This document shows positions 1 to 30,164 of a stretch of DNA of 64,000 nt, one piece after another; the stretch's first letter is position 1; each line of letters begins with the position of its first letter. A program made the position numbers and the translations under genes. The DNA lies in the NCBI GenBank assembly GCA_044892525.1, contig CM097887.1:106494397-106558396 (forward strand), in the 5' to 3' direction. The notes below the pieces were generated by a model that was not told where the DNA came from, did not search any database, and saw only the letters and a list, made by a program, of their open reading frames with translations. The stretch comes from Schmidtea polychroa (lineage: Eukaryota).

Positions 1-297
1 TCAAGGTCATTTATATTTTTAAGGTCATTCATATTTTCAAGGTCATATTTTAAAATTTAAATTTTTAGAGTTCCCACCAATGGAATTTATTGGCCGATGG
101 CTAATTTTGAAGCCCACTGCAATACCTTTCGAATGACGTATAGATATTCATATTATCATTATTATTAATAAAGATATTATTTTTTCAAAATATTATTTTT
201 CAAGGTCGTTTATTTTTTCAAGGTTCAAAATCTGTTCAAAGCTACTGTTTTAGTCAATACGAACCAGATGAAATAATCGGTTCCATCGCCAAAAGTG

Positions 298-500
298 ATG
301 CTCATCCTATTTGAATATATGCCTGAAAGATTGAAAGATTCAAGTTGAAAGACCTGAAATTAGAAGACAATCACAAGAAAATATTATCCGGACAATTGAT
401 GTCCGGACTGCAATACTTGCATAATTTGAATATCGCCCACTGCAATATCAATCCAAAAGACATTTTCGATGATATGGCAGAATTAAGATTAAAGATTTCA
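298..500 (+). pseudogene. Frameshifted CDK/CMGC-like protein kinase relic (subdomains V-VII), copy 1
   Basis: Three consecutive frames read MLILFEYMPERLKD (298-348) / KLEDNHKKILSGQLMSGLQYLHNLNIAHCNINPKDIFD (327-472) / YGRIKIKDFKL (473 onward). This parallels CDK-type LVFEFL..DLK...QILQGI.FCH...[25 protein letters not shown]. HRD reads HCN and DFG reads DFK; no activation loop or APE follows. Confidence 0.7.
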
Positions 501-1039
501 AACTTTGGAGGACGAATAATAAAATTGCGCTTATCGTCATATTAGAAAATGACCAGCGAGTCGAGAGATTAGTGCTCAACCATGCTTATCTAAGTAGAAG
601 ATGGACAATCAAACCAGATACCGTGACAAAGGCGAACATTTCGTATTTGGAATTTACGGAGAGAACCGGTTGGTATACAATATATCAAGAAATAGTAAAT
701 CTAATACCTCCCACAAAAGGAGAACTAACTGGCAAAGAAGGAAAGGCTAGATTAGTGAGTATTCCTGGTTGTAAAGGAATAAAGGCTTTGGATTGGTTTA
801 GTATCAGAAAGGTAGCGAGTGTAAACCAGCCCCGCATAAATAAATTAATTAATAATTGTAGAGTTCAAAATACGTTAAACGGGACAACGAGAGATAAAAC
901 CTCAACTTGGTTATTCTTAATCATGATAGGGGGAGTAATTTGCATGATTTTAATTTTGATATTAACCACCCTATGGATGCTTAGATTAAATATGCGGGAT
1001 ATTCGTTATTGGGAAATTATTTACGAAACCGAGGTATAG
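473..1039 (+). CDS. Unknown ORF with a C-terminal transmembrane helix (stop-to-stop 188 aa; the track calls 155 aa from GTG 572), copy 1
   Basis: The frame is open from TGA 470-472 to TAG 1037-1039. It contains the hydrophobic stretch WLFLIMIGGVICMILILILTTLWML followed by basic residues. I recognise no family. Confidence 0.5.
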   Translation, partial: YGRIKIKDFKLWRTNNKIALIVILENDQRVERLVLNHAYLSRRWTIKPDTVTKANISYLEFTERTGWYTIYQEIVNLIPPTKGELTGKEGKARLVSIPGCKGIKALDWFSIRKVASVNQPRINKLINNCRVQNTLNGTTRDKTSTWLFLIMIGGVICMILILILTTLWMLRLNMRDIRYWEIIYETEV

Positions 1040-1094
1040 GGGGAAAGTCTCACCATATACTAGGAAGTGTAAATATATATTTTATCTATTTTAT

Positions 1095-2114
1095 ATGTTA
1101 TTTATATTAGTATGTAAACTAATGTGGGCTCAAATGAGCATCGGTAAAATCAGACATCAGCGTATGTCGACTTTGGTTACCCTGCGAGGGTCTATCACGA
1201 AAGTGATAAAAGCTGTTAATTATTTTATTTTTAGAAAAATGAATTATAACAGAGAACCAAAACCACCAGTCAAAGCAAATCGACGACACCCATTGGCAAC
1301 GTACAATTCCCAGACTCGAGTTGAAACTGAAGTATATAGTACATACAAAGAAGAGTACGTATACAGGTTCATCGGAACTACGGTCGCAGCAAAAATGAAT
1401 CACCTCACCTCAAACTATTGGTATTATCCCAGGAGAGTGGATATTCCAAACGATTTCAAATTCGCAGGAGGGCCTCGAAAGCAAATGATGATAACGGTTA
1501 TAAATAACCAAGGTAGATTAAAATTGGCGGAACTATGTAGAGATTATGGTTCATGTCCGAAATTGGAAAACATTTGGATCCATGCGATCAATAGGCCATT
1601 CACTGTGTTTATGGCGGGATTAGAGTTACCTGTTGAATTAGAAAAACAGTGTACCCTGGAGATATACCACGCTGATGGACGAGAACGGAATATTATGATC
1701 CAGGCAGCAGCAGTTGATACCATAATCGCAGTAGAAATCTTGGATTTCAGGAAGCCATACTCTATAGTTAGCAAAAACGAGCCAACTTGGATTTACAATG
1801 TAAATAAAGTTGATATACAGCAGTGTAAATCATTTGTGAGGAAGAAGTTAACCAAAGCCGAGGAGGACGAGGCTACAATTTTCATATCGGCAGGTTTTGC
1901 CAAATCCCGAATCGAACTGAAGGAGACAATTATCCAAATCGCAATTATGGATATGAGGGGAAATAATTTATTGAGTGCGGTAGTGACTCCCAGAGACCCT
2001 GTAAAACACTACCAAACGCACCAATACAAGTTAAAGGAACCTGATATTAGAGGAAACCTCGACGAAGATGATTGTTATCCTCTGATAAGATCTGCGATAA
2101 GAAAATACTTGTAG
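1095..2114 (+). CDS. Unknown N-terminal domain plus the first half of a REX4/ISG20-like DEDDh exonuclease fold (likely start ATG 1239), copy 1
   Basis: 339-aa ORF. IIQIAIMDMRGNNLLSAVVTPRDPVKHYQT parallels REX4-family ARVSIVN..G..VYD.YVKP..PVTDYRT. ATG 1239 sits in AAAAATG context right after TTTTATTTTTAG. Confidence 0.65.
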   Translation: MLFILVCKLMWAQMSIGKIRHQRMSTLVTLRGSITKVIKAVNYFIFRKMNYNREPKPPVKANRRHPLATYNSQTRVETEVYSTYKEEYVYRFIGTTVAAKMNHLTSNYWYYPRRVDIPNDFKFAGGPRKQMMITVINNQGRLKLAELCRDYGSCPKLENIWIHAINRPFTVFMAGLELPVELEKQCTLEIYHADGRERNIMIQAAAVDTIIAVEILDFRKPYSIVSKNEPTWIYNVNKVDIQQCKSFVRKKLTKAEEDEATIFISAGFAKSRIELKETIIQIAIMDMRGNNLLSAVVTPRDPVKHYQTHQYKLKEPDIRGNLDEDDCYPLIRSAIRKYL

Positions 2115-2773
2115 GTATTTTGCTTAAAGATCTGATCTCGGTAGCCAATCTACCAGTGCAGCGGATACTGAGTATTCGTGACCTTTCTGCAAATAAACTA
2201 TTGGAAACCAGAGGAGTCCCAATGATTCATGGTCATTACAGATTGGGATTCCCGACGAAAACTTTCCTGCGTACGGTTCCCGGAGAACCAAGGAATTTAG
2301 TGGTCACCAATGAGGCACTGGCGATACGTGCGGTTTATTTACATCTCAGAAACGAATGGTTAGACCATATCACGAAACCCCAGGAGGAATTCATTTCCGT
2401 AACTACAGCAGCGATAGTTGAGCAGGAAATGACGCAAAAGAAGAGATTACCCGAGCAACCATCTACATCAGGGCAACCCAAGCCTAAGAGAAAATCACCT
2501 GTGGACTTACCACCGCCTCCAGCTATATCTATTGGAGAAGAAGATGAATATGAAACATGCGTTAGCGAAACGGAGACAGCAAAATCACCCAAACAATCAT
2601 CGGGAGCTGCCTATCAGCCAAAGGATAAATCGGAAAATGCGGTCAGAAAAGAAAATCCAGAAGGAGGCAAGGTGAAAAAGATGTTAAAGAAAATATTACC
2701 CATAAAAAGACAATTTTTTCAAATTTGTCAGACTTCCCGCCAACGGAAATTCTTCAACGATGTCTTATTTTAA
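2072..2773 (+). CDS. Second half of the REX4/ISG20-like exonuclease fold plus a disordered basic tail with bipartite NLS (-1 frame relative to the upstream ORF), copy 1
   Basis: KKILVGILLKDL, SIRDLS and NEALAIRAVYLHLRNEW parallel REX4-family GRILVGHALHNDL, KIRDT and QDAQAAMRLYVMVKKEW. The tail contains KKR-x11-KPKRK. The track start at 2072 is not an ATG. Confidence 0.65.
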   Translation: MLSSDKICDKKILVGILLKDLISVANLPVQRILSIRDLSANKLLETRGVPMIHGHYRLGFPTKTFLRTVPGEPRNLVVTNEALAIRAVYLHLRNEWLDHITKPQEEFISVTTAAIVEQEMTQKKRLPEQPSTSGQPKPKRKSPVDLPPPPAISIGEEDEYETCVSETETAKSPKQSSGAAYQPKDKSENAVRKENPEGGKVKKMLKKILPIKRQFFQICQTSRQRKFFNDVLF

Positions 2774-2890
2774 AGCTCATTGCAATACCTTTCGAATGTG
2801 GTATAGAAATCCATATTATCAATATTATTGGTAAAGATATTATTTTTTCAAAATATTATTTTTTCAAGGTCATTTATATTTTCAAGGTCA
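2767..2890 (+). repeat. Direct repeat R1 (~124 bp) of the unit's non-coding region
   Basis: Aligns by eye to 2985-3107 with about 15 differences. The exonuclease-ORF stop (TAA 2771-2773) lies at its very start. Present in every unit. Confidence 0.9.
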
Positions 2891-2926
2891 TTTATATTTT
2901 CAAGGTCATTCATATTTTCAAGGTCA
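2864..2926 (+). promoter_or_regulatory. 18-bp tandem repeat x4, each carrying TCAAGGTCA (NR5A/FTZ-F1/ERR-type site)
   Basis: TCAAGGTCA at 2864, 2882, 2900 and 2918 (period 18). TCAAGGTCG at 3081 also fits YCAAGGYCR. The repeat is certain; the regulatory role is inferred. Confidence 0.55.
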
Positions 2927-2984
2927 TATTTTAAAATTTAAATTTTTAGAGTTCCCACCAATGGAATTTATTGGCCGATGGCTA

Positions 2985-3107
2985 ATTTTGAAGCCCACTG
3001 CAATACCTTTCGAATGACGTATAGATATTCATATTATCATTATTATTAATAAAGATATTATTTTTTCAAAATATTATTTTTCAAGGTCGTTTATTTTTTC
3101 AAGGTTC
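2985..3107 (+). repeat. Direct repeat R2 (~123 bp), diverged copy of R1, containing AATAAA (3048-3053)
   Basis: Shares the GCAATACCTTTCGAATG core and the downstream T-rich/TCAAGGT blocks with R1 at an offset of 217-218 bp. Confidence 0.9.
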
Positions 3108-3178
3108 AAAATCTGTTCAAAGCTACTGTTTTAGTCAATACGAACCAGATGAAATAATCGGTTCCATCGCCAAAAGTG

Positions 3179-5654
3179 ATGCTCATCCTATTTGAATATA
3201 TGCCTGAAAGATTGAAAGATTCAAGTTGAAAGACCTGAAATTAGAAGACAATCACAAGAAAATATTATCCGGACAATTGATGTCCGGACTGCAATACTTG
3301 CATAATTTGAATATCGCCCACTGCAATATCAATCCAAAAGACATTTTCGATGATATGGCAGAATTAAGATTAAAGATTTCAAACTTTGGAGGACGAATAA
3401 TAAAATTGCGCTTATCGTCATATTAGAAAATGACCAGCGAGTCGAGAGATTAGTGCTCAACCATGCTTATCTAAGTAGAAGATGGACAATCAAACCAGAT
3501 ACCGTGACAAAGGCGAACATTTCGTATTTGGAATTTACGGAGAGAACCGGTTGGTATACAATATATCAAGAAATAGTAAATCTAATACCTCCCACAAAAG
3601 GAGAACTAACTGGCAAAGAAGGAAAGGCTAGATTAGTGAGTATTCCTGGTTGTAAAGGAATAAAGGCTTTGGATTGGTTTAGTATCAGAAAGGTAGCGAG
3701 TGTAAACCAGCCCCGCATAAATAAATTAATTAATAATTGTAGAGTTCAAAATACGTTAAACGGGACAACGAGAGATAAAACCTCAACTTGGTTATTCTTA
3801 ATCATGATAGGGGGAGTAATTTGCATGATTTTAATTTTGATATTAACCACCCTATGGATGCTTAGATTAAATATGCGGGATATTCGTTATTGGGAAATTA
3901 TTTACGAAACCGAGGTATAGGGGGAAAGTCTCACCATATACTAGGAAGTGTAAATATATATTTTATCTATTTTATATGTTATTTATATTAGTATGTAAAC
4001 TAATGTGGGCTCAAATGAGCATCGGTAAAATCAGACATCAGCGTATGTCGACTTTGGTTACCCTGCGAGGGTCTATCACGAAAGTGATAAAAGCTGTTAA
4101 TTATTTTATTTTTAGAAAAATGAATTATAACAGAGAACCAAAACCACCAGTCAAAGCAAATCGACGACACCCATTGGCAACGTACAATTCCCAGACTCGA
4201 GTTGAAACTGAAGTATATAGTACATACAAAGAAGAGTACGTATACAGGTTCATCGGAACTACGGTCGCAGCAAAAATGAATCACCTCACCTCAAACTATT
4301 GGTATTATCCCAGGAGAGTGGATATTCCAAACGATTTCAAATTCGCAGGAGGGCCTCGAAAGCAAATGATGATAACGGTTATAAATAACCAAGGTAGATT
4401 AAAATTGGCGGAACTATGTAGAGATTATGGTTCATGTCCGAAATTGGAAAACATTTGGATCCATGCGATCAATAGGCCATTCACTGTGTTTATGGCGGGA
4501 TTAGAGTTACCTGTTGAATTAGAAAAACAGTGTACCCTGGAGATATACCACGCTGATGGACGAGAACGGAATATTATGATCCAGGCAGCAGCAGTTGATA
4601 CCATAATCGCAGTAGAAATCTTGGATTTCAGGAAGCCATACTCTATAGTTAGCAAAAACGAGCCAACTTGGATTTACAATGTAAATAAAGTTGATATACA
4701 GCAGTGTAAATCATTTGTGAGGAAGAAGTTAACCAAAGCCGAGGAGGACGAGGCTACAATTTTCATATCGGCAGGTTTTGCCAAATCCCGAATCGAACTG
4801 AAGGAGACAATTATCCAAATCGCAATTATGGATATGAGGGGAAATAATTTATTGAGTGCGGTAGTGACTCCCAGAGACCCTGTAAAACACTACCAAACGC
4901 ACCAATACAAGTTAAAGGAACCTGATATTAGAGGAAACCTCGACGAAGATGATTGTTATCCTCTGATAAGATCTGCGATAAGAAAATACTTGTAGGTATT
5001 TTGCTTAAAGATCTGATCTCGGTAGCCAATCTACCAGTGCAGCGGATACTGAGTATTCGTGACCTTTCTGCAAATAAACTATTGGAAACCAGAGGAGTCC
5101 CAATGATTCATGGTCATTACAGATTGGGATTCCCGACGAAAACTTTCCTGCGTACGGTTCCCGGAGAACCAAGGAATTTAGTGGTCACCAATGAGGCACT
5201 GGCGATACGTGCGGTTTATTTACATCTCAGAAACGAATGGTTAGACCATATCACGAAACCCCAGGAGGAATTCATTTCCGTAACTACAGCAGCGATAGTT
5301 GAGCAGGAAATGACGCAAAAGAAGAGATTACCCGAGCAACCATCTACATCAGGGCAACCCAAGCCTAAGAGAAAATCACCTGTGGACTTACCACCGCCTC
5401 CAGCTATATCTATTGGAGAAGAAGATGAATATGAAACATGCGTTAGCGAAACGGAGACAGCAAAATCACCCAAACAATCATCGGGAGCTGCCTATCAGCC
5501 AAAGGATAAATCGGAAAATGCGGTCAGAAAAGAAAATCCAGAAGGAGGCAAGGTGAAAAAGATGTTAAAGAAAATATTACCCATAAAAAGACAATTTTTT
5601 CAAATTTGTCAGACTTCCCGCCAACGGAAATTCTTCAACGATGTCTTATTTTAA
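3179..5654 (+). other. Coding cassette copy 2 (kinase relic, TM ORF, split exonuclease-like ORFs)
   Basis: Same ORFs as copy 1 at +2881. Confidence 0.9.
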
Positions 5655-6059
5655 AGCTCATTGCAATACCTTTCGAATGTGGTATAGAAATCCATATTAT
5701 CAATATTATTGGTAAAGATATTATTTTTTCAAAATATTATTTTTTCAAGGTCATTTATATTTTCAAGGTCATTTATATTTTCAAGGTCATTCATATTTTC
5801 AAGGTCATATTTTAAAATTTAAATTTTTAGAGTTCCCACCAATGGAATTTATTGGCCGATGGCTAATTTTGAAGCCCACTGCAATACCTTTCGAATGACG
5901 TATAGATATTCATATTATCATTATTATTAATAAAGATATTATTTTTTCAAAATATTATTTTTCAAGGTCGTTTATTTTTTCAAGGTTCAAAATCTGTTCA
6001 AAGCTACTGTTTTAGTCAATACAAACCAGATGAAATAATTGGTTCCATCGCCAAAAGTG

Positions 6060-8535
6060 ATGCTCATCCTATTTGAATATATGCCTGAAAGATTGAAAGA
6101 TTCAAGTTGAAAGACCTGAAATTAGAAGACAATCACAAGAAAATATTATCCGGACAATTGATGTCCGGACTGCAATACTTGCATAATTTGAATATCGCCC
6201 ACTGCAATATCAATCCAAAAGACATTTTCGATGATATGGCAGAATTAAGATTAAAGATTTCAAACTTTGGAGGACGAATAATAAAATTGCGCTTATCGTC
6301 ATATTAGAAAATGACCAGCGAGTCGAGAGATTAGTGCTCAACCATGCTTATCTAAGTAGAAGATGGACAATCAAACCAGATACCGTGACAAAGGCGAACA
6401 TTTCGTATTTGGAATTTACGGAGAGAACCGGTTGGTATACAATATATCAAGAAATAGTAAATCTAATACCTCCCACAAAAGGAGAACTAACTGGCAAAGA
6501 AGGAAAGGCTAGATTAGTGAGTATTCCTGGTTGTAAAGGAATAAAGGCTTTGGATTGGTTTAGTATCAGAAAGGTAGCGAGTGTAAACCAGCCCCGCATA
6601 AATAAATTAATTAATAATTGTAGAGTTCAAAATACGTTAAACGGGACAACGAGAGATAAAACCTCAACTTGGTTATTCTTAATCATGATAGGGGGAGTAA
6701 TTTGCATGATTTTAATTTTGATATTAACCACCCTATGGATGCTTAGATTAAATATGCGGGATATTCGTTATTGGGAAATTATTTACGAAACCGAGGTATA
6801 GGGGGAAAGTCTCACCATATACTAGGAAGTGTAAATATATATTTTATCTATTTTATATGTTATTTATATTAGTATGTAAACTAATGTGGGCTCAAATGAG
6901 CATCGGTAAAATCAGACATCAGCGTATGTCGACTTTGGTTACCCTGCGAGGGTCTATCACGAAAGTGATAAAAGCTGTTAATTATTTTATTTTTAGAAAA
7001 ATGAATTATAACAGAGAACCAAAACCACCAGTCAAAGCAAATCGACGACACCCATTGGCAACGTACAATTCCCAGACTCGAGTTGAAACTGAAGTATATA
7101 GTACATACAAAGAAGAGTACGTATACAGGTTCATCGGAACTACGGTCGCAGCAAAAATGAATCACCTCACCTCAAACTATTGGTATTATCCCAGGAGAGT
7201 GGATATTCCAAATGATTTCAAATTCGCAGGAGGGCCTCGAAAGCAAATGATGATAACGGTTATAAATAACCAAGGTAGATTAAAATTGGCGGAACTATGT
7301 AGAGATTATGGTTCATGTCCGAAATTGGAAAACATTTGGATCCATGCGATCAATAGGCCATTCACTGTGTTTATGGCGGGATTAGAGTTACCTGTTGAAT
7401 TAGAAAAACAGTGTACCCTGGAGATATACCACGCTGATGGACGAGAACGGAATATTATGATCCAGGCAGCAGCAGTTGATACCATAATCGCAGTAGAAAT
7501 CTTGGATTTCAGGAAGCCATACTCTATAGTTAGCAAAAACGAGCCAACTTGGATTTACAATGTAAATAAAGTTGATATACAGCAGTGTAAATCATTTGTG
7601 AGGAAGAAGTTAACCAAAGCCGAGGAGGACGAGGCTACAATTTTCATATCGGCAGGTTTTGCCAAATCCCGAATCGAACTGAAGGAGACAATTATCCAAA
7701 TCGCAATTATGGATATGAGGGGAAATAATTTATTGAGTGCGGTAGTGACTCCCAGAGACCCTGTAAAACACTACCAAACGCACCAATACAAGTTAAAGGA
7801 ACCTGATATTAGAGGAAACCTCGACGAAGATGATTGTTATCCTCTGATAAGATCTGCGATAAGAAAATACTTGTAGGTATTTTGCTTAAAGATCTGATCT
7901 CGGTAGCCAATCTACCAGTGCAGCGGATACTGAGTATTCGTGACCTTTCTGCAAATAAACTATTGGAAACCAGAGGAGTCCCAATGATTCATGGTCATTA
8001 CAGATTGGGATTCCCGACGAAAACTTTCCTGCGTACGGTTCCCGGAGAACCAAGGAATTTAGTGGTCACCAATGAGGCACTGGCGATACGTGCGGTTTAT
8101 TTACATCTCAGAAACGAATGGTTAGACCATATCACGAAACCCCAGGAGGAATTCATTTCCGTAACTACAGCAGCGATAGTTGAGCAGGAAATGACGCAAA
8201 AGAGGAGATTACCCGAGCAACCATCTACATCAGGGCAACCCAAGCCTAAGAGAAAATCACCTGTGGACTTACCACCGCCTCCAGCTATATCTATTGGAGA
8301 AGAAGATGAATATGAAACATGCGTTAGCGAAACGGAGACAGCAAAATCACCCAAACAATCATCGGGAGCTGCCTATCAGCCAAAGGATAAATCGGAAAAT
8401 GCGGTCAGAAAAGAAAATCCAGAAGGAGGCAAGGTGAAAAAGATGTTAAAGAAAATATTACCCATAAAAAGACAATTTTTTCAAATTTGTCAGACTTCCA
8501 GCCAACGGAAATTCTTCAACGATGTCTTATTTTAA
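6060..8535 (+). other. Coding cassette copy 3
   Basis: Same ORFs at +5762; carries the K>R and R>S variants. Confidence 0.9.
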
Positions 8536-8940
8536 AGCTCATTGCAATACCTTTCGAATGTGGTATAGAAATCCATATTATCAATATTATTGGTAAAGAT
8601 ATTATTTTTTCAAAATATTATTTTTTCAAGGTCATTTATATTTTCAAGGTCATTTATATTTTCAAGGTCATTCATATTTTCAAGGTCATATTTTAAAATT
8701 TAAATTTTTAGAGTTCCCACCAATGGAATTTATTGGCCGATGGCTAATTTTGAAGCCCACTGCAATACCTTTCGAATGACGTATAGATATTCATATTATC
8801 ATTATTATTAATAAAGATATTATTTTTTCAAAATATTATTTTTCAAGGTCGTTTATTTTTTCAAGGTTCAAAATCTGTTCAAAGCTACTGTTTTAGTCAA
8901 TACGAACCAGATGAAATAATCGGTTCCATCGCCAAAAGTG

Positions 8941-11416: not shown

Positions 11417-11821
11417 AGCTCATTGCAATACCTTTCGAATGTGGTATAGAAATCCATATTATCAATATTATTGGTAAAGATATTATTTTTTCAAAATATT
11501 ATTTTTTCAAGGTCATTTATATTTTCAAGGTCATTTATATTTTCAAGGTCATTCATATTTTCAAGGTCATATTTTAAAATTTAAATTTTTAGAGTTCCCA
11601 CCAATGGAATTTATTGGCCGATGGCTAATTTTGAAGCCCACTGCAATACCTTTCGAATGACGTATAGATATTCATATTATCATTATTATTAATAAAGATA
11701 TTATTTTTTCAAAATATTATTTTTCAAGGTCGTTTATTTTTTCAAGGTTCAAAATCTGTTCAAAGCTACTGTTTTAGTCAATACGAACCAGATGAAATAA
11801 TCGGTTCCATCGCCAAAAGTG

Positions 11822-14297
11822 ATGCTCATCCTATTTGAATATATGCCTGAAAGATTGAAAGATTCAAGTTGAAAGACCTGAAATTAGAAGACAATCACAA
11901 GAAAATATTATCCGGACAATTGATGTCCGGACTGCAATACTTGCATAATTTGAATATCGCCCACTGCAATATCAATCCAAAAGACATTTTCGATGATATG
12001 GCAGAATTAAGATTAAAGATTTCAAACTTTGGAGGACGAATAATAAAATTGCGCTTATCGTCATATTAGAAAATGACCAGCGAGTCGAGAGATTAGTGCT
12101 CAACCATGCTTATCTAAGTAGAAGATGGACAATCAAACCAGATACCGTGACAAAGGCGAACATTTCGTATTTGGAATTTACGGAGAGAACCGGTTGGTAT
12201 ACAATATATCAAGAAATAGTAAATCTAATACCTCCCACAAAAGGAGAACTAACTGGCAAAGAAGGAAAGGCTAGATTAGTGAGTATTCCTGGTTGTAAAG
12301 GAATAAAGGCTTTGGATTGGTTTAGTATCAGAAAGGTAGCGAGTGTAAACCAGCCCCGCATAAATAAATTAATTAATAATTGTAGAGTTCAAAATACGTT
12401 AAACGGGACAACGAGAGATAAAACCTCAACTTGGTTATTCTTAATCATGATAGGGGGAGTAATTTGCATGATTTTAATTTTGATATTAACCACCCTATGG
12501 ATGCTTAGATTAAATATGCGGGATATTCGTTATTGGGAAATTATTTACGAAACCGAGGTATAGGGGGAAAGTCTCACCATATACTAGGAAGTGTAAATAT
12601 ATATTTTATCTATTTTATATGTTATTTATATTAGTATGTAAACTAATGTGGGCTCAAATGAGCATCGGTAAAATCAGACATCAGCGTATGTCGACTTTGG
12701 TTACCCTGCGAGGGTCTATCACGAAAGTGATAAAAGCTGTTAATTATTTTATTTTTAGAAAAATGAATTATAACAGAGAACCAAAACCACCAGTCAAAGC
12801 AAATCGACGACACCCATTGGCAACGTACAATTCCCAGACTCGAGTTGAAACTGAAGTATATAGTACATACAAAGAAGAGTACGTATACAGGTTCATCGGA
12901 ACTACGGTCGCAGCAAAAATGAATCACCTCACCTCAAACTATTGGTATTATCCCAGGAGAGTGGATATTCCAAATGATTTCAAATTCGCAGGAGGGCCTC
13001 GAAAGCAAATGATGATAACGGTTATAAATAACCAAGGTAGATTAAAATTGGCGGAACTATGTAGAGATTATGGTTCATGTCCGAAATTGGAAAACATTTG
13101 GATCCATGCGATCAATAGGCCATTCACTGTGTTTATGGCGGGATTAGAGTTACCTGTTGAATTAGAAAAACAGTGTACCCTGGAGATATACCACGCTGAT
13201 GGACGAGAACGGAATATTATGATCCAGGCAGCAGCAGTTGATACCATAATCGCAGTAGAAATCTTGGATTTCAGGAAGCCATACTCTATAGTTAGCAAAA
13301 ACGAGCCAACTTGGATTTACAATGTAAATAAAGTTGATATACAGCAGTGTAAATCATTTGTGAGGAAGAAGTTAACCAAAGCCGAGGAGGACGAGGCTAC
13401 AATTTTCATATCGGCAGGTTTTGCCAAATCCCGAATCGAACTGAAGGAGACAATTATCCAAATCGCAATTATGGATATGAGGGGAAATAATTTATTGAGT
13501 GCGGTAGTGACTCCCAGAGACCCTGTAAAACACTACCAAACGCACCAATACAAGTTAAAGGAACCTGATATTAGAGGAAACCTCGACGAAGATGATTGTT
13601 ATCCTCTGATAAGATCTGCGATAAGAAAATACTTGTAGGTATTTTGCTTAAAGATCTGATCTCGGTAGCCAATCTACCAGTGCAGCGGATACTGAGTATT
13701 CGTGACCTTTCTGCAAATAAACTATTGGAAACCAGAGGAGTCCCAATGATTCATGGTCATTACAGATTGGGATTCCCGACGAAAACTTTCCTGCGTACGG
13801 TTCCCGGAGAACCAAGGAATTTAGTGGTCACCAATGAGGCACTGGCGATACGTGCGGTTTATTTACATCTCAGAAACGAATGGTTAGACCATATCACGAA
13901 ACCCCAGGAGGAATTCATTTCCGTAACTACAGCAGCGATAGTTGAGCAGGAAATGACGCAAAAGAGGAGATTACCCGAGCAACCATCTACATCAGGGCAA
14001 CCCAAGCCTAAGAGAAAATCACCTGTGGACTTACCACCGCCTCCAGCTATATCTATTGGAGAAGAAGATGAATATGAAACATGCGTTAGCGAAACGGAGA
14101 CAGCAAAATCACCCAAACAATCATCGGGAGCTGCCTATCAGCCAAAGGATAAATCGGAAAATGCGGTCAGAAAAGAAAATCCAGAAGGAGGCAAGGTGAA
14201 AAAGATGTTAAAGAAAATATTACCCATAAAAAGACAATTTTTTCAAATTTGTCAGACTTCCAGCCAACGGAAATTCTTCAACGATGTCTTATTTTAA
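11822..14297 (+). other. Coding cassette copy 5
   Basis: Same ORFs at +11524. Confidence 0.9.
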
Positions 14298-14702
14298 AGC
14301 TCATTGCAATACCTTTCGAATGTGGTATAGAAATCCATATTATCAATATTATTGGTAAAGATATTATTTTTTCAAAATATTATTTTTTCAAGGTCATTTA
14401 TATTTTCAAGGTCATTTATATTTTCAAGGTCATTCATATTTTCAAGGTCATATTTTAAAATTTAAATTTTTAGAGTTCCCACCAATGGAATTTATTGGCC
14501 GATGGCTAATTTTGAAGCCCACTGCAATACCTTTCGAATGACGTATAGATATTCATATTATCATTATTATTAATAAAGATATTATTTTTTCAAAATATTA
14601 TTTTTCAAGGTCGTTTATTTTTTCAAGGTTCAAAATCTGTTCAAAGCTACTGTTTTAGTCAATACGAACCAGATGAAATAATCGGTTCCATCGCCAAAAG
14701 TG

Positions 14703-17178: not shown

Positions 17179-17583
17179 AGCTCATTGCAATACCTTTCGA
17201 ATGTGGTATAGAAATCCATATTATCAATATTATTGGTAAAGATATTATTTTTTCAAAATATTATTTTTTCAAGGTCATTTATATTTTCAAGGTCATTTAT
17301 ATTTTCAAGGTCATTCATATTTTCAAGGTCATATTTTAAAATTTAAATTTTTAGAGTTCCCACCAATGGAATTTATTGGCCGATGGCTAATTTTGAAGCC
17401 CACTGCAATACCTTTCGAATGACGTATAGATATTCATATTATCATTATTATTAATAAAGATATTATTTTTTCAAAATATTATTTTTCAAGGTCGTTTATT
17501 TTTTCAAGGTTCAAAATCTGTTCAAAGCTACTGTTTTAGTCAATACGAACCAGATGAAATAATCGGTTCCATCGCCAAAAGTG

Positions 17584-20059: not shown

Positions 20060-20464
20060 AGCTCATTGCAATACCTTTCGAATGTGGTATAGAAATCCAT
20101 ATTATCAATATTATTGGTTAAGATATTATTTTTTCAAAATATTATTTTTTCAAGGTCATTTATATTTTCAAGGTCATTTATATTTTCAAGGTCATTCATA
20201 TTTTCAAGGTCATATTTTAAAATTTAAATTTTTAGAGTTCCCACCAATGGAATTTATTGGCCGATGGCTAATTTTGAAGCCCACTGCAATACCTTTCGAA
20301 TGACGTATAGATATTCATATTATCATTATTATTAATAAAGATATTATTTTTTCAAAATATTATTTTTCAAGGTCGTTTATTTTTTCAAGGTTCAAAATCT
20401 GTTCAAAGCTACTGTTTTAGTCAATACGAACCAGATGAAATAATCGGTTCCATCGCCAAAAGTG

Positions 20465-22940
20465 ATGCTCATCCTATTTGAATATATGCCTGAAAGATTG
20501 AAAGATTCAAGTTGAAAGACCTGAAATTAGAAGACAATCACAAGAAAATATTATCCGGACAATTGATGTCCGGACTGCAATACTTGCATAATTTGAATAT
20601 CGCCCACTGCAATATCAATCCAAAAGACATTTTCGATGATATGGCAGAATTAAGATTAAAGATTTCAAACTTTGGAGGACGAATAATAAAATTGCGCTTA
20701 TCGTCATATTAGAAAATGACCAGCGAGTCGAGAGATTAGTGCTCAACCATGCTTATCTAAGTAGAAGATGGACAATCAAACCAGATACCGTGACAAAGGC
20801 GAACATTTCGTATTTGGAATTTACGGAGAGAACCGGTTGGTATACAATATATCAAGAAATAGTAAATCTAATACCTCCCACAAAAGGAGAACTAACTGGC
20901 AAAGAAGGAAAGGCTAGATTAGTGAGTATTCCTGGTTGTAAAGGAATAAAGGCTTTGGATTGGTTTAGTATCAGAAAGGTAGCGAGTGTAAACCAGCCCC
21001 GCATAAATAAATTAATTAATAATTGTAGAGTTCAAAATACGTTAAACGGGACAACGAGAGATAAAACCTCAACTTGGTTATTCTTAATCATGATAGGGGG
21101 AGTAATTTGCATGATTTTAATTTTGATATTAACCACCCTATGGATGCTTAGATTAAATATGCGGGATATTCGTTATTGGGAAATTATTTACGAAACCGAG
21201 GTATAGGGGGAAAGTCTCACCATATACTAGGAAGTGTAAATATATATTTTATCTATTTTATATGTTATTTATATTAGTATGTAAACTAATGTGGGCTCAA
21301 ATGAGCATCGGTAAAATCAGACATCAGCGTATGTCGACTTTGGTTACCCTGCGAGGGTCTATCACGAAAGTGATAAAAGCTGTTAATTATTTTATTTTTA
21401 GAAAAATGAATTATAACAGAGAACCAAAACCACCAGTCAAAGCAAATCGACGACACCCATTGGCAACGTACAATTCCCAGACTCGAGTTGAAACTGAAGT
21501 ATATAGTACATACAAAGAAGAGTACGTATACAGGTTCATCGGAACTACGGTCGCAGCAAAAATGAATCACCTCACCTCAAACTATTGGTATTATCCCAGG
21601 AGAGTGGATATTCCAAATGATTTCAAATTCGCAGGAGGGCCTCGAAAGCAAATGATGATAACGGTTATAAATAACCAAGGTAGATTAAAATTGGCGGAAC
21701 TATGTAGAGATTATGGTTCATGTCCGAAATTGGAAAACATTTGGATCCATGCGATCAATAGGCCATTCACTGTGTTTATGGCGGGATTAGAGTTACCTGT
21801 TGAATTAGAAAAACAGTGTACCCTGGAGATATACCACGCTGATGGACGAGAACGGAATATTATGATCCAGGCAGCAGCAGTTGATACCATAATCGCAGTA
21901 GAAATCTTGGATTTCAGGAAGCCATACTCTATAGTTAGCAAAAACGAGCCAACTTGGATTTACAATGTAAATAAAGTTGATATACAGCAGTGTAAATCAT
22001 TTGTGAGGAAGAAGTTAACCAAAGCCGAGGAGGACGAGGCTACAATTTTCATATCGGCAGGTTTTGCCAAATCCCGAATCGAACTGAAGGAGACAATTAT
22101 CCAAATCGCAATTATGGATATGAGGGGAAATAATTTATTGAGTGCGGTAGTGACTCCCAGAGACCCTGTAAAACACTACCAAACGCACCAATACAAGTTA
22201 AAGGAACCTGATATTAGAGGAAACCTCGACGAAGATGATTGTTATCCTCTGATAAGATCTGCGATAAGAAAATACTTGTAGGTATTTTGCTTAAAGATCT
22301 GATCTCGGTAGCCAATCTACCAGTGCAGCGGATACTGAGTATTCGTGACCTTTCTGCAAATAAACTATTGGAAACCAGAGGAGTCCCAATGATTCATGGT
22401 CATTACAGATTGGGATTCCCGACGAAAACTTTCCTGCGTACGGTTCCCGGAGAACCAAGGAATTTAGTGGTCACCAATGAGGCACTGGCGATACGTGCGG
22501 TTTATTTACATCTCAGAAACGAATGGTTAGACCATATCACGAAACCCCAGGAGGAATTCATTTCCGTAACTACAGCAGCGATAGTTGAGCAGGAAATGAC
22601 GCAAAAGAGGAGATTACCCGAGCAACCATCTACATCAGGGCAACCCAAGCCTAAGAGAAAATCACCTGTGGACTTACCACCGCCTCCAGCTATATCTATT
22701 GGAGAAGAAGATGAATATGAAACATGCGTTAGCGAAACGGAGACAGCAAAATCACCCAAACAATCATCGGGAGCTGCCTATCAGCCAAAGGATAAATCGG
22801 AAAATGCGGTCAGAAAAGAAAATCCAGAAGGAGGCAAGGTGAAAAAGATGTTAAAGAAAATATTACCCATAAAAAGACAATTTTTTCAAATTTGTCAGAC
22901 TTCCCGCCAACGGAAATTCTTCAACGATGTCTTATTTTAA
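20465..22940 (+). other. Coding cassette copy 8
   Basis: Same ORFs at +20167. Confidence 0.9.
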
Positions 22941-23345
22941 AGCTCATTGCAATACCTTTCGAATGTGGTATAGAAATCCATATTATCAATATTATTGGTA
23001 AAGATATTATTTTTTCAAAATATTATTTTTTCAAGGTCATTTATATTTTCAAGGTCATTTATATTTTCAAGGTCATTCATATTTTCAAGGTCATATTTTA
23101 AAATTTAAATTTTTAGAGTTCCCACCAATGGAATTTATTGGCCGATGGCTAATTTTGAAGCCCACTGCAATACCTTTCGAATGACGTATAGATATTCATA
23201 TTATCATTATTATTAATAAAGATATTATTTTTTCAAAATATTATTTTTCAAGGTCGTTTATTTTTTCAAGGTTCAAAATCTGTTCAAAGCTACTGTTTTA
23301 GTCAATACGAACCAGATGAAATAATCGGTTCCATCGCCAAAAGTG

Positions 23346-25821
23346 ATGCTCATCCTATTTGAATATATGCCTGAAAGATTGAAAGATTCAAGTTGAAAGA
23401 CCTGAAATTAGAAGACAATCACAAGAAAATATTATCCGGACAATTGATGTCCGGACTGCAATACTTGCATAATTTGAATATCGCCCACTGCAATATCAAT
23501 CCAAAAGACATTTTCGATGATATGGCAGAATTAAGATTAAAGATTTCAAACTTTGGAGGACGAATAATAAAATTGCGCTTATCGTCATATTAGAAAATGA
23601 CCAGCGAGTCGAGAGATTAGTGCTCAACCATGCTTATCTAAGTAGAAGATGGACAATCAAACCAGATACCGTGACAAAGGCGAACATTTCGTATTTGGAA
23701 TTTACGGAGAGAACCGGTTGGTATACAATATATCAAGAAATAGTAAATCTAATACCTCCCACAAAAGGAGAACTAACTGGCAAAGAAGGAAAGGCTAGAT
23801 TAGTGAGTATTCCTGGTTGTAAAGGAATAAAGGCTTTGGATTGGTTTAGTATCAGAAAGGTAGCGAGTGTAAACCAGCCCCGCATAAATAAATTAATTAA
23901 TAATTGTAGAGTTCAAAATACGTTAAACGGGACAACGAGAGATAAAACCTCAACTTGGTTATTCTTAATCATGATAGGGGGAGTAATTTGCATGATTTTA
24001 ATTTTGATATTAACCACCCTATGGATGCTTAGATTAAATATGCGGGATATTCGTTATTGGGAAATTATTTACGAAACCGAGGTATAGGGGGAAAGTCTCA
24101 CCATATACTAGGAAGTGTAAATATATATTTTATCTATTTTATATGTTATTTATATTAGTATGTAAACTAATGTGGGCTCAAATGAGCATCGGTAAAATCA
24201 GACATCAGCGTATGTCGACTTTGGTTACCCTGCGAGGGTCTATCACGAAAGTGATAAAAGCTGTTAATTATTTTATTTTTAGAAAAATGAATTATAACAG
24301 AGAACCAAAACCACCAGTCAAAGCAAATCGACGACACCCATTGGCAACGTACAATTCCCAGACTCGAGTTGAAACTGAAGTATATAGTACATACAAAGAA
24401 GAGTACGTATACAGGTTCATCGGAACTACGGTCGCAGCAAAAATGAATCACCTCACCTCAAACTATTGGTATTATCCCAGGAGAGTGGATATTCCAAATG
24501 ATTTCAAATTCGCAGGAGGGCCTCGAAAGCAAATGATGATAACGGTTATAAATAACCAAGGTAGATTAAAATTGGCGGAACTATGTAGAGATTATGGTTC
24601 ATGTCCGAAATTGGAAAACATTTGGATCCATGCGATCAATAGGCCATTCACTGTGTTTATGGCGGGATTAGAGTTACCTGTTGAATTAGAAAAACAGTGT
24701 ACCCTGGAGATATACCACGCTGATGGACGAGAACGGAATATTATGATCCAGGCAGCAGCAGTTGATACCATAATCGCAGTAGAAATCTTGGATTTCAGGA
24801 AGCCATACTCTATAGTTAGCAAAAACGAGCCAACTTGGATTTACAATGTAAATAAAGTTGATATACAGCAGTGTAAATCATTTGTGAGGAAGAAGTTAAC
24901 CAAAGCCGAGGAGGACGAGGCTACAATTTTCATATCGGCAGGTTTTGCCAAATCCCGAATCGAACTGAAGGAGACAATTATCCAAATCGCAATTATGGAT
25001 ATGAGGGGAAATAATTTATTGAGTGCGGTAGTGACTCCCAGAGACCCTGTAAAACACTACCAAACGCACCAATACAAGTTAAAGGAACCTGATATTAGAG
25101 GAAACCTCGACGAAGATGATTGTTATCCTCTGATAAGATCTGCGATAAGAAAATACTTGTAGGTATTTTGCTTAAAGATCTGATCTCGGTAGCCAATCTA
25201 CCAGTGCAGCGGATACTGAGTATTCGTGACCTTTCTGCAAATAAACTATTGGAAACCAGAGGAGTCCCAATGATTCATGGTCATTACAGATTGGGATTCC
25301 CGACGAAAACTTTCCTGCGTACGGTTCCCGGAGAACCAAGGAATTTAGTGGTCACCAATGAGGCACTGGCGATACGTGCGGTTTATTTACATCTCAGAAA
25401 CGAATGGTTAGACCATATCACGAAACCCCAGGAGGAATTCATTTCCGTAACTACAGCAGCGATAGTTGAGCAGGAAATGACGCAAAAGAGGAGATTACCC
25501 GAGCAACCATCTACATCAGGGCAACCCAAGCCTAAGAGAAAATCACCTGTGGACTTACCACCGCCTCCAGCTATATCTATTGGAGAAGAAGATGAATATG
25601 AAACATGCGTTAGCGAAACGGAGACAGCAAAATCACCCAAACAATCATCGGGAGCTGCCTATCAGCCAAAGGATAAATCGGAAAATGCGGTCAGAAAAGA
25701 AAATCCAGAAGGAGGCAAGGTGAAAAAGATGTTAAAGAAAATATTACCCATAAAAAGACAATTTTTTCAAATTTGTCAGACTTCCCGCCAACGGAAATTC
25801 TTCAACGATGTCTTATTTTAA
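23346..25821 (+). other. Coding cassette copy 9
   Basis: Same ORFs at +23048. Confidence 0.9.
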
Positions 25822-26226
25822 AGCTCATTGCAATACCTTTCGAATGTGGTATAGAAATCCATATTATCAATATTATTGGTAAAGATATTATTTTTTCAAA
25901 ATATTATTTTTTCAAGGTCATTTATATTTTCAAGGTCATTTATATTTTCAAGGTCATTCATATTTTCAAGGTCATATTTTAAAATTTAAATTTTTAGAGT
26001 TCCCACCAATGGAATTTATTGGCCGATGGCTAATTTTGAAGCCCACTGCAATACCTTTCGAATGACGTATAGATATTCATATTATCATTATTATTAATAA
26101 AGATATTATTTTTTCAAAATATTATTTTTCAAGGTCGTTTATTTTTTCAAGGTTCAAAATCTGTTCAAAGCTACTGTTTTAGTCAATACGAACCAGATGA
26201 AATAATCGGTTCCATCGCCAAAAGTG

Positions 26227-28702
26227 ATGCTCATCCTATTTGAATATATGCCTGAAAGATTGAAAGATTCAAGTTGAAAGACCTGAAATTAGAAGACAAT
26301 CACAAGAAAATATTATCCGGACAATTGATGTCCGGACTGCAATACTTGCATAATTTGAATATCGCCCACTGCAATATCAATCCAAAAGACATTTTCGATG
26401 ATATGGCAGAATTAAGATTAAAGATTTCAAACTTTGGAGGACGAATAATAAAATTGCGCTTATCGTCATATTAGAAAATGACCAGCGAGTCGAGAGATTA
26501 GTGCTCAACCATGCTTATCTAAGTAGAAGATGGACAATCAAACCAGATACCGTGACAAAGGCGAACATTTCGTATTTGGAATTTACGGAGAGAACCGGTT
26601 GGTATACAATATATCAAGAAATAGTAAATCTAATACCTCCCACAAAAGGAGAACTAACTGGCAAAGAAGGAAAGGCTAGATTAGTGAGTATTCCTGGTTG
26701 TAAAGGAATAAAGGCTTTGGATTGGTTTAGTATCAGAAAGGTAGCGAGTGTAAACCAGCCCCGCATAAATAAATTAATTAATAATTGTAGAGTTCAAAAT
26801 ACGTTAAACGGGACAACGAGAGATAAAACCTCAACTTGGTTATTCTTAATCATGATAGGGGGAGTAATTTGCATGATTTTAATTTTGATATTAACCACCC
26901 TATGGATGCTTAGATTAAATATGCGGGATATTCGTTATTGGGAAATTATTTACGAAACCGAGGTATAGGGGGAAAGTCTCACCATATACTAGGAAGTGTA
27001 AATATATATTTTATCTATTTTATATGTTATTTATATTAGTATGTAAACTAATGTGGGCTCAAATGAGCATCGGTAAAATCAGACATCAGCGTATGTCGAC
27101 TTTGGTTACCCTGCGAGGGTCTATCACGAAAGTGATAAAAGCTGTTAATTATTTTATTTTTAGAAAAATGAATTATAACAGAGAACCAAAACCACCAGTC
27201 AAAGCAAATCGACGACACCCATTGGCAACGTACAATTCCCAGACTCGAGTTGAAACTGAAGTATATAGTACATACAAAGAAGAGTACGTATACAGGTTCA
27301 TCGGAACTACGGTCGCAGCAAAAATGAATCACCTCACCTCAAACTATTGGTATTATCCCAGGAGAGTGGATATTCCAAATGATTTCAAATTCGCAGGAGG
27401 GCCTCGAAAGCAAATGATGATAACGGTTATAAATAACCAAGGTAGATTAAAATTGGCGGAACTATGTAGAGATTATGGTTCATGTCCGAAATTGGAAAAC
27501 ATTTGGATCCATGCGATCAATAGGCCATTCACTGTGTTTATGGCGGGATTAGAGTTACCTGTTGAATTAGAAAAACAGTGTACCCTGGAGATATACCACG
27601 CTGATGGACGAGAACGGAATATTATGATCCAGGCAGCAGCAGTTGATACCATAATCGCAGTAGAAATCTTGGATTTCAGGAAGCCATACTCTATAGTTAG
27701 CAAAAACGAGCCAACTTGGATTTACAATGTAAATAAAGTTGATATACAGCAGTGTAAATCATTTGTGAGGAAGAAGTTAACCAAAGCCGAGGAGGACGAG
27801 GCTACAATTTTCATATCGGCAGGTTTTGCCAAATCCCGAATCGAACTGAAGGAGACAATTATCCAAATCGCAATTATGGATATGAGGGGAAATAATTTAT
27901 TGAGTGCGGTAGTGACTCCCAGAGACCCTGTAAAACACTACCAAACGCACCAATACAAGTTAAAGGAACCTGATATTAGAGGAAACCTCGACGAAGATGA
28001 TTGTTATCCTCTGATAAGATCTGCGATAAGAAAATACTTGTAGGTATTTTGCTTAAAGATCTGATCTCGGTAGCCAATCTACCAGTGCAGCGGATACTGA
28101 GTATTCGTGACCTTTCTGCAAATAAACTATTGGAAACCAGAGGAGTCCCAATGATTCATGGTCATTACAGATTGGGATTCCCGACGAAAACTTTCCTGCG
28201 TACGGTTCCCGGAGAACCAAGGAATTTAGTGGTCACCAATGAGGCACTGGCGATACGTGCGGTTTATTTACATCTCAGAAACGAATGGTTAGACCATATC
28301 ACGAAACCCCAGGAGGAATTCATTTCCGTAACTACAGCAGCGATAGTTGAGCAGGAAATGACGCAAAAGAGGAGATTACCCGAGCAACCATCTACATCAG
28401 GGCAACCCAAGCCTAAGAGAAAATCACCTGTGGACTTACCACCGCCTCCAGCTATATCTATTGGAGAAGAAGATGAATATGAAACATGCGTTAGCGAAAC
28501 GGAGACAGCAAAATCACCCAAACAATCATCGGGAGCTGCCTATCAGCCAAAGGATAAATCGGAAAATGCGGTCAGAAAAGAAAATCCAGAAGGAGGCAAG
28601 GTGAAAAAGATGTTAAAGAAAATATTACCCATAAAAAGACAATTTTTTCAAATTTGTCAGACTTCCCGCCAACGGAAATTCTTCAACGATGTCTTATTTT
28701 AA
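26227..28702 (+). other. Coding cassette copy 10
   Basis: Same ORFs at +25929. Confidence 0.9.
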
Positions 28703-29107
28703 AGCTCATTGCAATACCTTTCGAATGTGGTATAGAAATCCATATTATCAATATTATTGGTAAAGATATTATTTTTTCAAAATATTATTTTTTCAAGGTC
28801 ATTTATATTTTCAAGGTCATTTATATTTTCAAGGTCATTCATATTTTCAAGGTCATATTTTAAAATTTAAATTTTTAGAGTTCCCACCAATGGAATTTAT
28901 TGGCCGATGGCTAATTTTGAAGCCCACTGCAATACCTTTCGAATGACGTATAGATATTCATATTATCATTATTATTAATAAAGATATTATTTTTTCAAAA
29001 TATTATTTTTCAAGGTCGTTTATTTTTTCAAGGTTCAAAATCTGTTCAAAGCTACTGTTTTAGTCAATACGAACCAGATGAAATAATCGGTTCCATCGCC
29101 AAAAGTG

Positions 29108-30164
29108 ATGCTCATCCTATTTGAATATATGCCTGAAAGATTGAAAGATTCAAGTTGAAAGACCTGAAATTAGAAGACAATCACAAGAAAATATTATCCG
29201 GACAATTGATGTCCGGACTGCAATACTTGCATAATTTGAATATCGCCCACTGCAATATCAATCCAAAAGACATTTTCGATGATATGGCAGAATTAAGATT
29301 AAAGATTTCAAACTTTGGAGGACGAATAATAAAATTGCGCTTATCGTCATATTAGAAAATGACCAGCGAGTCGAGAGATTAGTGCTCAACCATGCTTATC
29401 TAAGTAGAAGATGGACAATCAAACCAGATACCGTGACAAAGGCGAACATTTCGTATTTGGAATTTACGGAGAGAACCGGTTGGTATACAATATATCAAGA
29501 AATAGTAAATCTAATACCTCCCACAAAAGGAGAACTAACTGGCAAAGAAGGAAAGGCTAGATTAGTGAGTATTCCTGGTTGTAAAGGAATAAAGGCTTTG
29601 GATTGGTTTAGTATCAGAAAGGTAGCGAGTGTAAACCAGCCCCGCATAAATAAATTAATTAATAATTGTAGAGTTCAAAATACGTTAAACGGGACAACGA
29701 GAGATAAAACCTCAACTTGGTTATTCTTAATCATGATAGGGGGAGTAATTTGCATGATTTTAATTTTGATATTAACCACCCTATGGATGCTTAGATTAAA
29801 TATGCGGGATATTCGTTATTGGAAATTATTTACGAAACCGAGGTATAGGGGGAAAGTCTCACCATATACTAGGAAGTGTAAATATATATTTTATCTATTT
29901 TATATGTTATTTATATTAGTATGTAAACTAATGTGGGCTCAAATGAGCATCGGTAAAATCAGACATCAGCGTATGTCGACTTTGGTTACCCTGCGAGGGT
30001 CTATCACGAAAGTGATAAAAGCTGTTAATTATTTTATTTTTAGAAAAATGAATTATAACAGAGAACCAAAACCACCAGTCAAAGCAAATCGACGACACCC
30101 ATTGGCAACGTACAATTCCCAGACTCGAGTTGAAACTGAAGTATATAGTACATACAAAGAAGAG
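29108..30164 (+). other. Partial cassette copy 11, truncated by the gap; a 1-nt deletion fuses the TM ORF to the downstream ORF
   Basis: TATTGGAAATT at about 29821 versus TATTGGGAAATT in copies 1-10. The ORF from 29382 runs open into the gap. Confidence 0.85.

Follow-up and report, generated by a model that had tools for sequence, protein, structure and literature searches.

The first 30,164 base pairs (bp) of the Schmidtea polychroa DNA described here consist of a tandem array of near-identical 2,881-bp units. Each unit carries a broken gene whose relatives, where their surroundings could be seen, belong to retrovirus-like elements. The whole stretch analyzed, designated the window, is 64,000 nucleotides (nt) long and covers positions 106,494,397 to 106,558,396 of the forward strand of contig CM097887.1 (assembly GCA_044892525.1). 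The array probably represents part of an endogenous retrovirus-like element, a chimeric and non-autonomous fragment that was amplified and homogenized as a macrosatellite. The gene itself, the setting of its relatives, and the absence of any replication gene from the unit are the main evidence presented below. The features of the array are listed with window coordinates; parts of the unit are given for unit 2 and its left boundary.

1-30164, forward strand: tandem array (k-mer period, BLAST identity, variable columns, G+C content and skews)
2882-5762, forward strand: representative unit (unit 2), whose features repeat at 2,881-bp steps
2717-3105, forward strand: non-coding, regulatory-looking region across the unit boundary (internal BLAST matches, sequence)
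2856-2927 (5737-5808 one unit on), forward strand: 18-bp mini-repeat in four copies, each with an exact TCAAGGTCA (motif scan)
3158-3423, forward strand: fragment of a MAPK-like protein kinase, broken gene, roughly subdomains V to VII (Pfam Pkinase and PDB matches)
3354-3917, forward strand: open frame of 188 codons with a predicted transmembrane (TM) helix, called TM ORF (open reading frame [ORF] and TM-helix prediction)
4120-5651, forward strand: retroelement accessory gene "ORF3", about 515 codons, broken gene (relatives, profile, model, catalytic columns, tree)
About 4207-4630, forward strand: candidate N-terminal double-stranded beta-helix (AlkB/PHD-like) domain of the accessory gene (model of relative P0002)
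About 4738-5253, forward strand: ISG20-like DEDDh-fold domain without catalytic residues (family profile, fold match)
From there to 5651, forward strand: low-complexity tail with a short conserved C-terminal motif (alignment of relatives)
30165-30404, no strand: run of N over the right-hand junction of the array (k-mer analysis)

Architecture of the Array

The array contains 10.47 head-to-tail units, each of 2,881 bp, a length given by the spacing of 25,993 repeated 20-mers in the window. When unit 1 was compared with the window in BLAST, the ten full units were 99.79-100% identical with zero indels. The eleventh unit is partial (28811-30164) and has one single-base indel, the sole indel of the array. 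It changes the relation of two neighbouring open frames and may reflect an error of assembly. The ten full units have only nine variable columns, each due to substitution (seven transitions and two transversions); several variants are common to non-adjacent units, and units 8-10 are identical. Because the differences are substitutions only and some are common to non-adjacent units, the pattern fits better with real paralogous copies under ongoing exchange than with random assembly noise. Neither true end of the array is visible, since it extends past the left edge of the window, where it is cut by the window start, and on the right it ends at the N run.

The G+C content is 0.34-0.39 in the array vs. 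0.18-0.27 in most of the flank, and the forward strand of the array has an AT skew of +0.08 to +0.18 and a positive GC skew. An earlier note, made from the letters of this DNA, had described at least 10.5 near-identical tandem units of 2,881 bp, more GC-rich and more A/purine-skewed on the forward strand than the flank; k-mer period and BLAST bear out the array, and the base composition agrees with the rest. Tandem Repeats Finder, run with a longest period of 500, reported nothing in the window, and Rfam and tRNA scans of the whole window were empty. The head-to-tail order, the many copies, and the high identity are those of a satellite or macrosatellite.

Coding Capacity of the Unit

Open frames of 374, 233, and 188 codons are present on the forward strand of each unit. 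In 500 shuffles of the unit the longest ORF had 95 +/- 19 codons, with a maximum of 174. Because the forward frames exceed those of the shuffles and the reverse strand has no ORF above 96 codons, the forward strand is real, recently constrained coding sequence and the ORFs on the reverse strand are chance ones. Domain searches of the unit ORFs revealed no reverse transcriptase (RT), integrase (IN), transposase, Rep, or capsid domain, as the earlier note had stated. Gag, protease (PR), and RNase H (RH) are also absent from the unit, which does not hold the gene set of an autonomous long terminal repeat (LTR) retroelement. Without gag, protease, RT, and integrase, the unit is therefore unable to move by itself. 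Three other features named in the earlier note were also recovered: a kinase relic (a Pkinase match below the gathering score and MAPK6 as best PDB match), a TM ORF (one strong hydrophobic helix), and a pseudo-exonuclease, recognized through relatives, an ISG20-like profile, and catalytic columns.

Accessory Gene and its Relatives

The accessory gene runs from an ATG at 4120 to its end at 5651. One frameshift splits it in each of the ten full units, and in-frame stops are zero. The pieces of the window's large ORFs had no match in Pfam or PDB sequences, the 374-codon piece had none in a word-indexed search of 5.8 billion proteins, and an exact-sequence look-up found none of the window's ORFs in the 5.8-billion-protein collection. 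Scans of IMG/VR and JGI metagenomes gave neither a close relative of the accessory gene nor a 26-mer identical to one of the unit. An exhaustive HMMER search, covering 1.84 billion representatives, found 26 relatives, and those on long contigs are retroelement-borne. The best relative, P0002, has 562 amino acids (aa) and was matched with E 1e-35 and 32% identity. In local BLASTP, the alignment of the 374-codon piece starts at about its residue 100 and covers residues 3-265 of P0002; the 233-codon piece aligns to residues 269-411 of P0002 and P0004. Since they align to consecutive halves of relatives, the two ORFs are, on this alignment, recognized as successive parts of a single ancestral protein, 500-600 aa long (about 515 aa here).

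A short intron in place of the frameshift was considered and dropped: the pieces abut in the alignment of relatives with no residues missing, and neither a prediction tool nor any relative supports an intron at the break. Because one frameshift splits the gene in every copy, at most truncated products are possible from the array's accessory gene. Five sites of the gene differ among the copies, three synonymously and two non-synonymously, which is too sparse for a selection test. A close relative, P0003 (ENA ERZ27313623, contig of 2,452 nt), was also called as two consecutive ORFs, of 309 and 220 aa. As this contig carries the gene in two consecutive ORFs, split copies of the accessory gene occur beyond this array too.

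The profile of the accessory family (alignment A1) matches human ISG20L2 (7yw5) with E 1e-21 and ISG20 (1wlj) with E 2e-10; Arabidopsis SDN1 is matched too, and P0013, a distant member, reaches the gathering score of RNase_T in Pfam. An AlphaFold2 model of relative P0002 was built with 27 family sequences and is confident over residues 10-370. In Foldseek, its C-terminal half superposes on ISG20 and ISG20L2 with a TM-score of 0.80-0.81, normalized to the target, and also on the exonuclease domains of Pan2 and SDN1. The N-terminal half matches the double-stranded beta-helix of 2-oxoglutarate (2OG)-dependent oxygenases, with ALKBH6/7/8 and PHD2 at E of about 4e-4 and a TM-score of 0.40-0.45. No Pfam match was found for this domain, and the canonical iron triad (His-x-Asp...His) is not evident among 17 sequences; 15 of the 17 share one His and one Glu. 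The oxygenase likeness of the modelled domain may thus be taken as a fold-level lead only. In the viral fold library BFVD, the P0002 model found generic DEDDh exonucleases and AlkB/2OG-oxygenases of phages and giant viruses, and nothing more specific. An arenavirus-nucleoprotein-like exonuclease on an RNA-virus segment, suggested by the many relatives on contigs of about 2 kb, was rejected, as the long contigs are retroelements; fold searches of PDB and BFVD likewise gave no such viral protein.

The five DEDDh catalytic columns (Asp, Glu, Asp/Glu, His, Asp) are kept in 6 of the 16 aligned relatives; ten relatives have lost them, and none of the five residues is present in the window copy. Four motifs, Pro-Arg, Asp-Glu, Lys-Ile-x-Val-Gly, and Gly-Ile-Arg-Asp-Leu, are conserved across the catalytic and non-catalytic groups, each in 12-17 of 17 sequences, and the window copy retains most of these conserved non-catalytic positions. 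The altered active site claimed in the earlier note is therefore present, but it is common to relatives with intact reading frames; because of this, the loss of catalysis is an old trait of the lineage and not decay within the array. As the DEDDh residues are already replaced across the sub-lineage, the accessory protein of the parent element was more likely a nucleic-acid-binding factor than a nuclease.

Genomic Setting of the Relatives

Most relatives of the accessory gene lie on short contigs. On all four long contigs (L001, L004, L006, and L007), the gene is situated immediately 3' of a gag-env-pol polyprotein or, where this is degraded, of what is left of it. The contig L001 (12 kb) encodes a polyprotein of 3,181 aa with a zf-CCHC gag, Monjiviricetes_fusion (E 1e-90), PR, RT, RNase H, and IN, and the accessory gene comes after it. 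The order on L006 (16.6 kb) and L007 (15 kb) is similar to that of L001, with polyproteins of 3,700 and 4,057 aa, respectively, and L004 (14.9 kb) has a degraded version of the same layout. On L003, the accessory gene is preceded by a tail with a TM anchor, and this tail is homologous to the end of the polyprotein of L001. Every relative with enough context is thus retroelement-borne. According to their domains, the elements of the long contigs are assigned to Ty3/gypsy, errantivirus-like and of gag-env-pol type, with a class-III-like fusion glycoprotein. A host-like gene with a prolyl 4-hydroxylase alpha N-terminal domain (11676-12269) was identified on L004, 2.4 kb downstream of the degraded element; its presence shows that L004 is animal genomic DNA.

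In a neighbor-joining tree of the N-terminal 251 columns, computed without bootstrap support values, the window copy groups with P0002 inside a clade that also holds P0003-P0006. Its sister clade (P0007-P0009) is borne by retroelements, and so is the outgroup clade, in which the catalytic residues are intact; by parsimony, this argues for a retroelement origin of the window gene as well.

The region behind the integrase encodes a second membrane-like protein on L001 (8909-9931), L003 (3-434), L004 (6299-7555), L006 (8018-9037), and L007 (8878-9897). It is additional to the class-III-type fusion glycoprotein, which lies upstream of the protease. A TM anchor is near the C-terminus in all five, and a signal-like hydrophobic segment was also found in L001 and L004. 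The tails are partly homologous to each other (E down to 1e-51), and no Pfam domain was recognized in any of them. Directly after the accessory gene of L001, at 11777-11901, a sequence of 54 nt occurs twice (94% identity, 71 nt start to start). These sub-repeats recall by analogy those that follow the gene in the window unit, as well as the enhancer repeats of LTRs.

A GC-richer, Ty3/gypsy-like fragment is also present in the flank of the array, at 52140-53467 on the forward strand. It has an RVP match (E 5e-5) and the start of an RT that is 29-31% identical to the RT region of L001 and L004. No similarity to the array unit was found. As the flank carries this PR/RT fragment, gypsy-like elements live in this genome, and the fragment is unrelated to the array.

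Membrane ORF, Kinase Fragment, and Non-coding Region

The TM ORF has one strong TM helix (about 3792-3848) followed by a tail of 23 residues, and no ATG is present upstream of the helix. No sequence similarity was found for it in Pfam, sequence, and profile searches, and its homology to the TM tails of the relatives was not supported (hhalign probability 1.5%). The protein just upstream of the accessory gene on L001, L003, L004, L006, and L007 ends with a near-C-terminal TM helix, like the TM ORF. By position and topology only, the TM ORF would be what is left of the 3' part of a larger protein with a membrane anchor.

The kinase fragment matches Pfam Pkinase with E 6.6e-6 and 26 bits, below the gathering score, at model positions 94-143. 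About 50-70 residues align, from the catalytic loop to the DFG region. Its best PDB match is MAPK6/ERK3 (E 2e-6), followed by p38 and other MAPKs, and 806 PDB kinases were matched at E<1. Both ends are truncated, at least one frameshift is present, and the aspartates of the catalytic loop (HRD) and of DFG are replaced; a short upstream piece in another frame was spotted by eye only. Because the related elements are without a kinase, the piece would most simply be a host pseudogene fragment caught in the amplified segment.

The non-coding region consists of a module of about 170 bp in two diverged copies, at 2717-2888 and 2937-3105, with 84-85% identity (internal matches of 165-172 bp). The first copy begins in the final codons of the preceding unit's accessory gene, and a purine-rich stretch was noticed near the end of that gene. 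The region may be derived from an LTR or its U3 part; on the related contigs there is no LTR pair to compare.

Forty-two exact matches of TCAAGGTCA were found in the window, all in the array and all on the forward strand, where 0.4 would be expected by chance. Four are present per full unit, with a period of 18 bp. TCAAGGTCA is the established extended half-site recognized by nuclear receptors of the NR5A/FTZ-F1/ERR type. As the copies lie within a duplicated 18-bp mini-repeat, their number is not independent evidence of function, and the sites are motif matches, that is, putative receptor sites. Of the control region with nuclear-receptor sites in the earlier note, the exact repeats were thus found, but their count reflects only the duplication of the mini-repeat, and the sites are so far a motif match.

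Origin of the Array

From homology and gene order, the first part of the unit would be the 3' end of a gag-env-pol Ty3/gypsy element, with the TM-anchored tail of the protein encoded behind the integrase, the accessory gene, and downstream repeats that possibly belong to its LTR. A fragment of a MAPK-like host kinase would represent the second part and the repeat-rich non-coding region the third. The segment was probably amplified head to tail by unequal exchange between sister chromatids or homologues, and unequal exchange plus gene conversion would then hold the copies at about 99.9% identity. The present activity of the array would be that of a repeat, either as a one-strand transcription unit or as a heterochromatin block, and it could feed small-RNA silencing of related elements. 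Among the three origins proposed in the earlier note, a non-autonomous mobile-element array and a virus-like element come closest to this.

Several observations weigh against such an origin. No kinase occurs in the related elements that could account for the kinase fragment. The TM ORF shows no similarity to the TM tails of the relatives, and the accessory gene of the window follows this start-less ORF and the kinase fragment, not pol as on L001, L004, L006, and L007. For the non-coding region, neither an additional LTR copy nor a primer-binding site or polypurine tract was established, and BLAST found no copy of the region elsewhere in the window. Both array ends are unseen. The five closest relatives (P0002-P0006) are on contigs of 1.9-2.5 kb without context, which leaves room for a host-gene origin of this sub-clade. 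Finally, the accessory gene is almost intact, with one frameshift, no stops, and three synonymous changes among the five differences between copies; this is a sign of young decay, or it hints at function.

One alternative, an amplified domesticated gene, is unlikely. The host would have captured the accessory gene, with the TCAAGGTCA-repeat region as its driver, and the non-catalytic product would bind nucleic acid and, for example, hinder related elements; the frame break would be either tolerated or an artefact of the assembly. The near-intact state just described fits this, as the gene has its full length, and the non-catalytic positions conserved family-wide are kept. The short contigs of the nearest relatives show no retroelement context, and intact non-catalytic relatives (P0002, P0004, P0005, P0007, and P0009) indicate that the inactive form is maintained somewhere. 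However, the frame break is found in all ten full units, which also hold dead material (the kinase fragment and the TM ORF without a start). Five variable sites have no statistical power, and all relatives with context are retroelement-borne.

The array could be kept as a trap, similar to Su(Ste) or a piRNA cluster, that yields small RNAs against active elements with the accessory gene. This concerns function and is compatible with the retroelement origin, though as an explanation of why the array is kept it is unlikely. The chimeric unit of about 2.9 kb, composed of a gene fragment and sequence derived from a transposable element (TE), its single orientation, and its high homogeneity are as would be expected. 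The content comes from a retroelement family, and ORF3s of bdelloid TEs are covered by pi-like small RNAs (PMC5408684). Tandem arrays, however, require no function to persist.

Unlikely, too, is a further reading, in which the host would retain the array as a battery of the captured accessory gene, expressed in the germline, driven by nuclear-receptor sites, and restraining the parent gag-env-pol elements. Either small RNAs or a protein with an AlkB-like and a dead ISG20-like domain, which would bind nucleic acid and act as a dominant negative, would bring about the restraint. If this were true, a previously undescribed retroelement gene would here have been turned into a defence like Su(Ste) or Fv1.

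An integrated concatemer is very unlikely. In this case, a unit-length circle, such as one with a single LTR from a deleted element or an extrachromosomal circle of another kind, would have been copied by rolling circle and inserted as a block. The exact unit length without indels and the extreme uniformity of the units agree with it, and, should the non-coding part be an LTR, one unit would be as long as the LTR and the internal region together. On the other side, the junctions of the array are not visible, the unit has no Rep or circle-specific feature, and variants common to non-adjacent units are explained at least as well by ongoing exchange within an array as by one burst.

Over-expansion of a low-copy repeat in the assembly, or DNA of another organism, is highly improbable: near-identical repeats of kilobase size are hard to assemble, an N run adjoins the array, and its G+C content differs from the flank, but the substitutions are transition-biased and common to particular units instead of being random indels, TE-derived sequence commonly differs in G+C content from an AT-rich host (as the PR/RT fragment of the flank does), and collections of metagenome and viral contigs gave no match.

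Other Features of the Window

A long exon-like ORF with an ANF_receptor domain (Pfam, E 3e-10) was found at 46831-47799 on the reverse strand; its sole database relative has 271 aa and is 88% identical. By this domain, it is a host receptor gene, in type either a guanylyl cyclase or a glutamate receptor, and it is encoded on the other strand than the array. The window has seven runs of N, each 157-324 bases long, at 30165-30404, 35798-36121, 36684-36840, 40762-41025, 42177-42420, 62127-62328, and 63103-63260. One of them interrupts an ORF of 182 codons at 62112-62660 on the reverse strand, which looks like the first exon of a membrane protein.

Comparison with Known Elements

Tandem arrays derived from TEs are a known route to satellites (PMC5932611, PMC7004042, PMC7215508). 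They include arrays of Cassandra, a terminal-repeat retrotransposon in miniature (TRIM) (PMC7215508), TE dimers that grow into arrays (PMC5932611), and satellites that arose from LTR-retrotransposon sequence (PMC7004042). The array of the window is similar to these in that a piece of a retroelement without replication genes is present in at least ten homogeneous head-to-tail copies, probably expanded by recombination. It differs in its chimeric unit with a host kinase fragment and in carrying an almost full-length accessory gene rather than LTR or untranslated sequence or a whole element. The cited cases are from plants and Drosophila, and the LTR nature of the window's non-coding part is only putative. 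The earlier note had proposed a candidate undescribed element, a chimeric cassette of host-like enzyme folds. A new class of this kind is not supported: amplification of TE fragments is a known way to large satellite-like repeats, and the family of the main gene sits 3' in gag-env-pol elements on four of four long contigs. The array is ordinary in kind, and the gene family that it exposes is its more interesting part.

Stellate and Su(Ste) of Drosophila are tandem arrays of chimeric units of kilobase size, partly gene-derived and partly transposon-derived, and in this general respect the window array resembles them. No sequence relation to them was found, though no test was aimed at one, and the window unit differs in being dominated by a retroelement-derived gene.

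Juno and Vesta, LTR retrotransposons of bdelloid rotifers, have an extra 3' exonuclease ORF3 of unknown role, located near TM or env-like ORFs (PMC5408684). They share with the elements described here an extra 3' ORF of the DEDD superfamily. Their ORF3 is a DEDDy, RNase D-like protein with a largely intact motif, whereas the window family has a DEDDh fold of ISG20/REXO type fused to an AlkB/PHD-like domain, and catalysis is lost in 10 of its 16 aligned relatives and in the window copy. Errantivirus-like Ty3/gypsy elements with the order gag-env-pol and a class III envelope have been documented in Nematoda, Bryozoa, and Platyhelminthes (PMC13524379). The host elements of the relatives correspond to that description, with gag, a class-III-type fusion glycoprotein, and PR-RT-RH-IN in this order; a text search of that study showed no TM protein plus exonuclease-like ORF after pol. 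Gag, env, and pol, as described there, are all absent from the window array.

The accessory protein shares its domain fold with the DEDDh exonucleases ISG20, ISG20L2, and REXO (1wlj, 7yw5). Unlike these, the window copy and its clade are without the catalytic Asp, Glu, and His, and the protein is extended by a further domain at its N-terminus and by a long disordered tail. Maelstrom and EXD1 are similar in that they keep an exonuclease fold without catalytic residues, presumably for RNA binding (PMC5408684). The likeness is at superfamily level and may serve as a lead for function only. In a text search of the searchable literature for ISG20 or AlkB with a retrotransposon ORF3, such a gene was not described, and the accessory-gene family itself seems to be undescribed.

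The array is a further example of a mobile-element fragment that turned into a satellite with a kilobase unit. In this genome, it is useful for quality control of the assembly, for karyotype markers, and for repeat annotation. The accessory family combines an AlkB/PHD-like and an ISG20-like fold at the 3' end of envelope-bearing gag-env-pol elements; some of its members keep DEDDh, and others have lost it with their reading frames still intact. In vertebrates, ISG20 is an antiviral nuclease. A relative of ISG20 that is borne by retroelements and has repeatedly lost catalysis raises the question of what use such elements have for enzymes of RNA ends or RNA modification.

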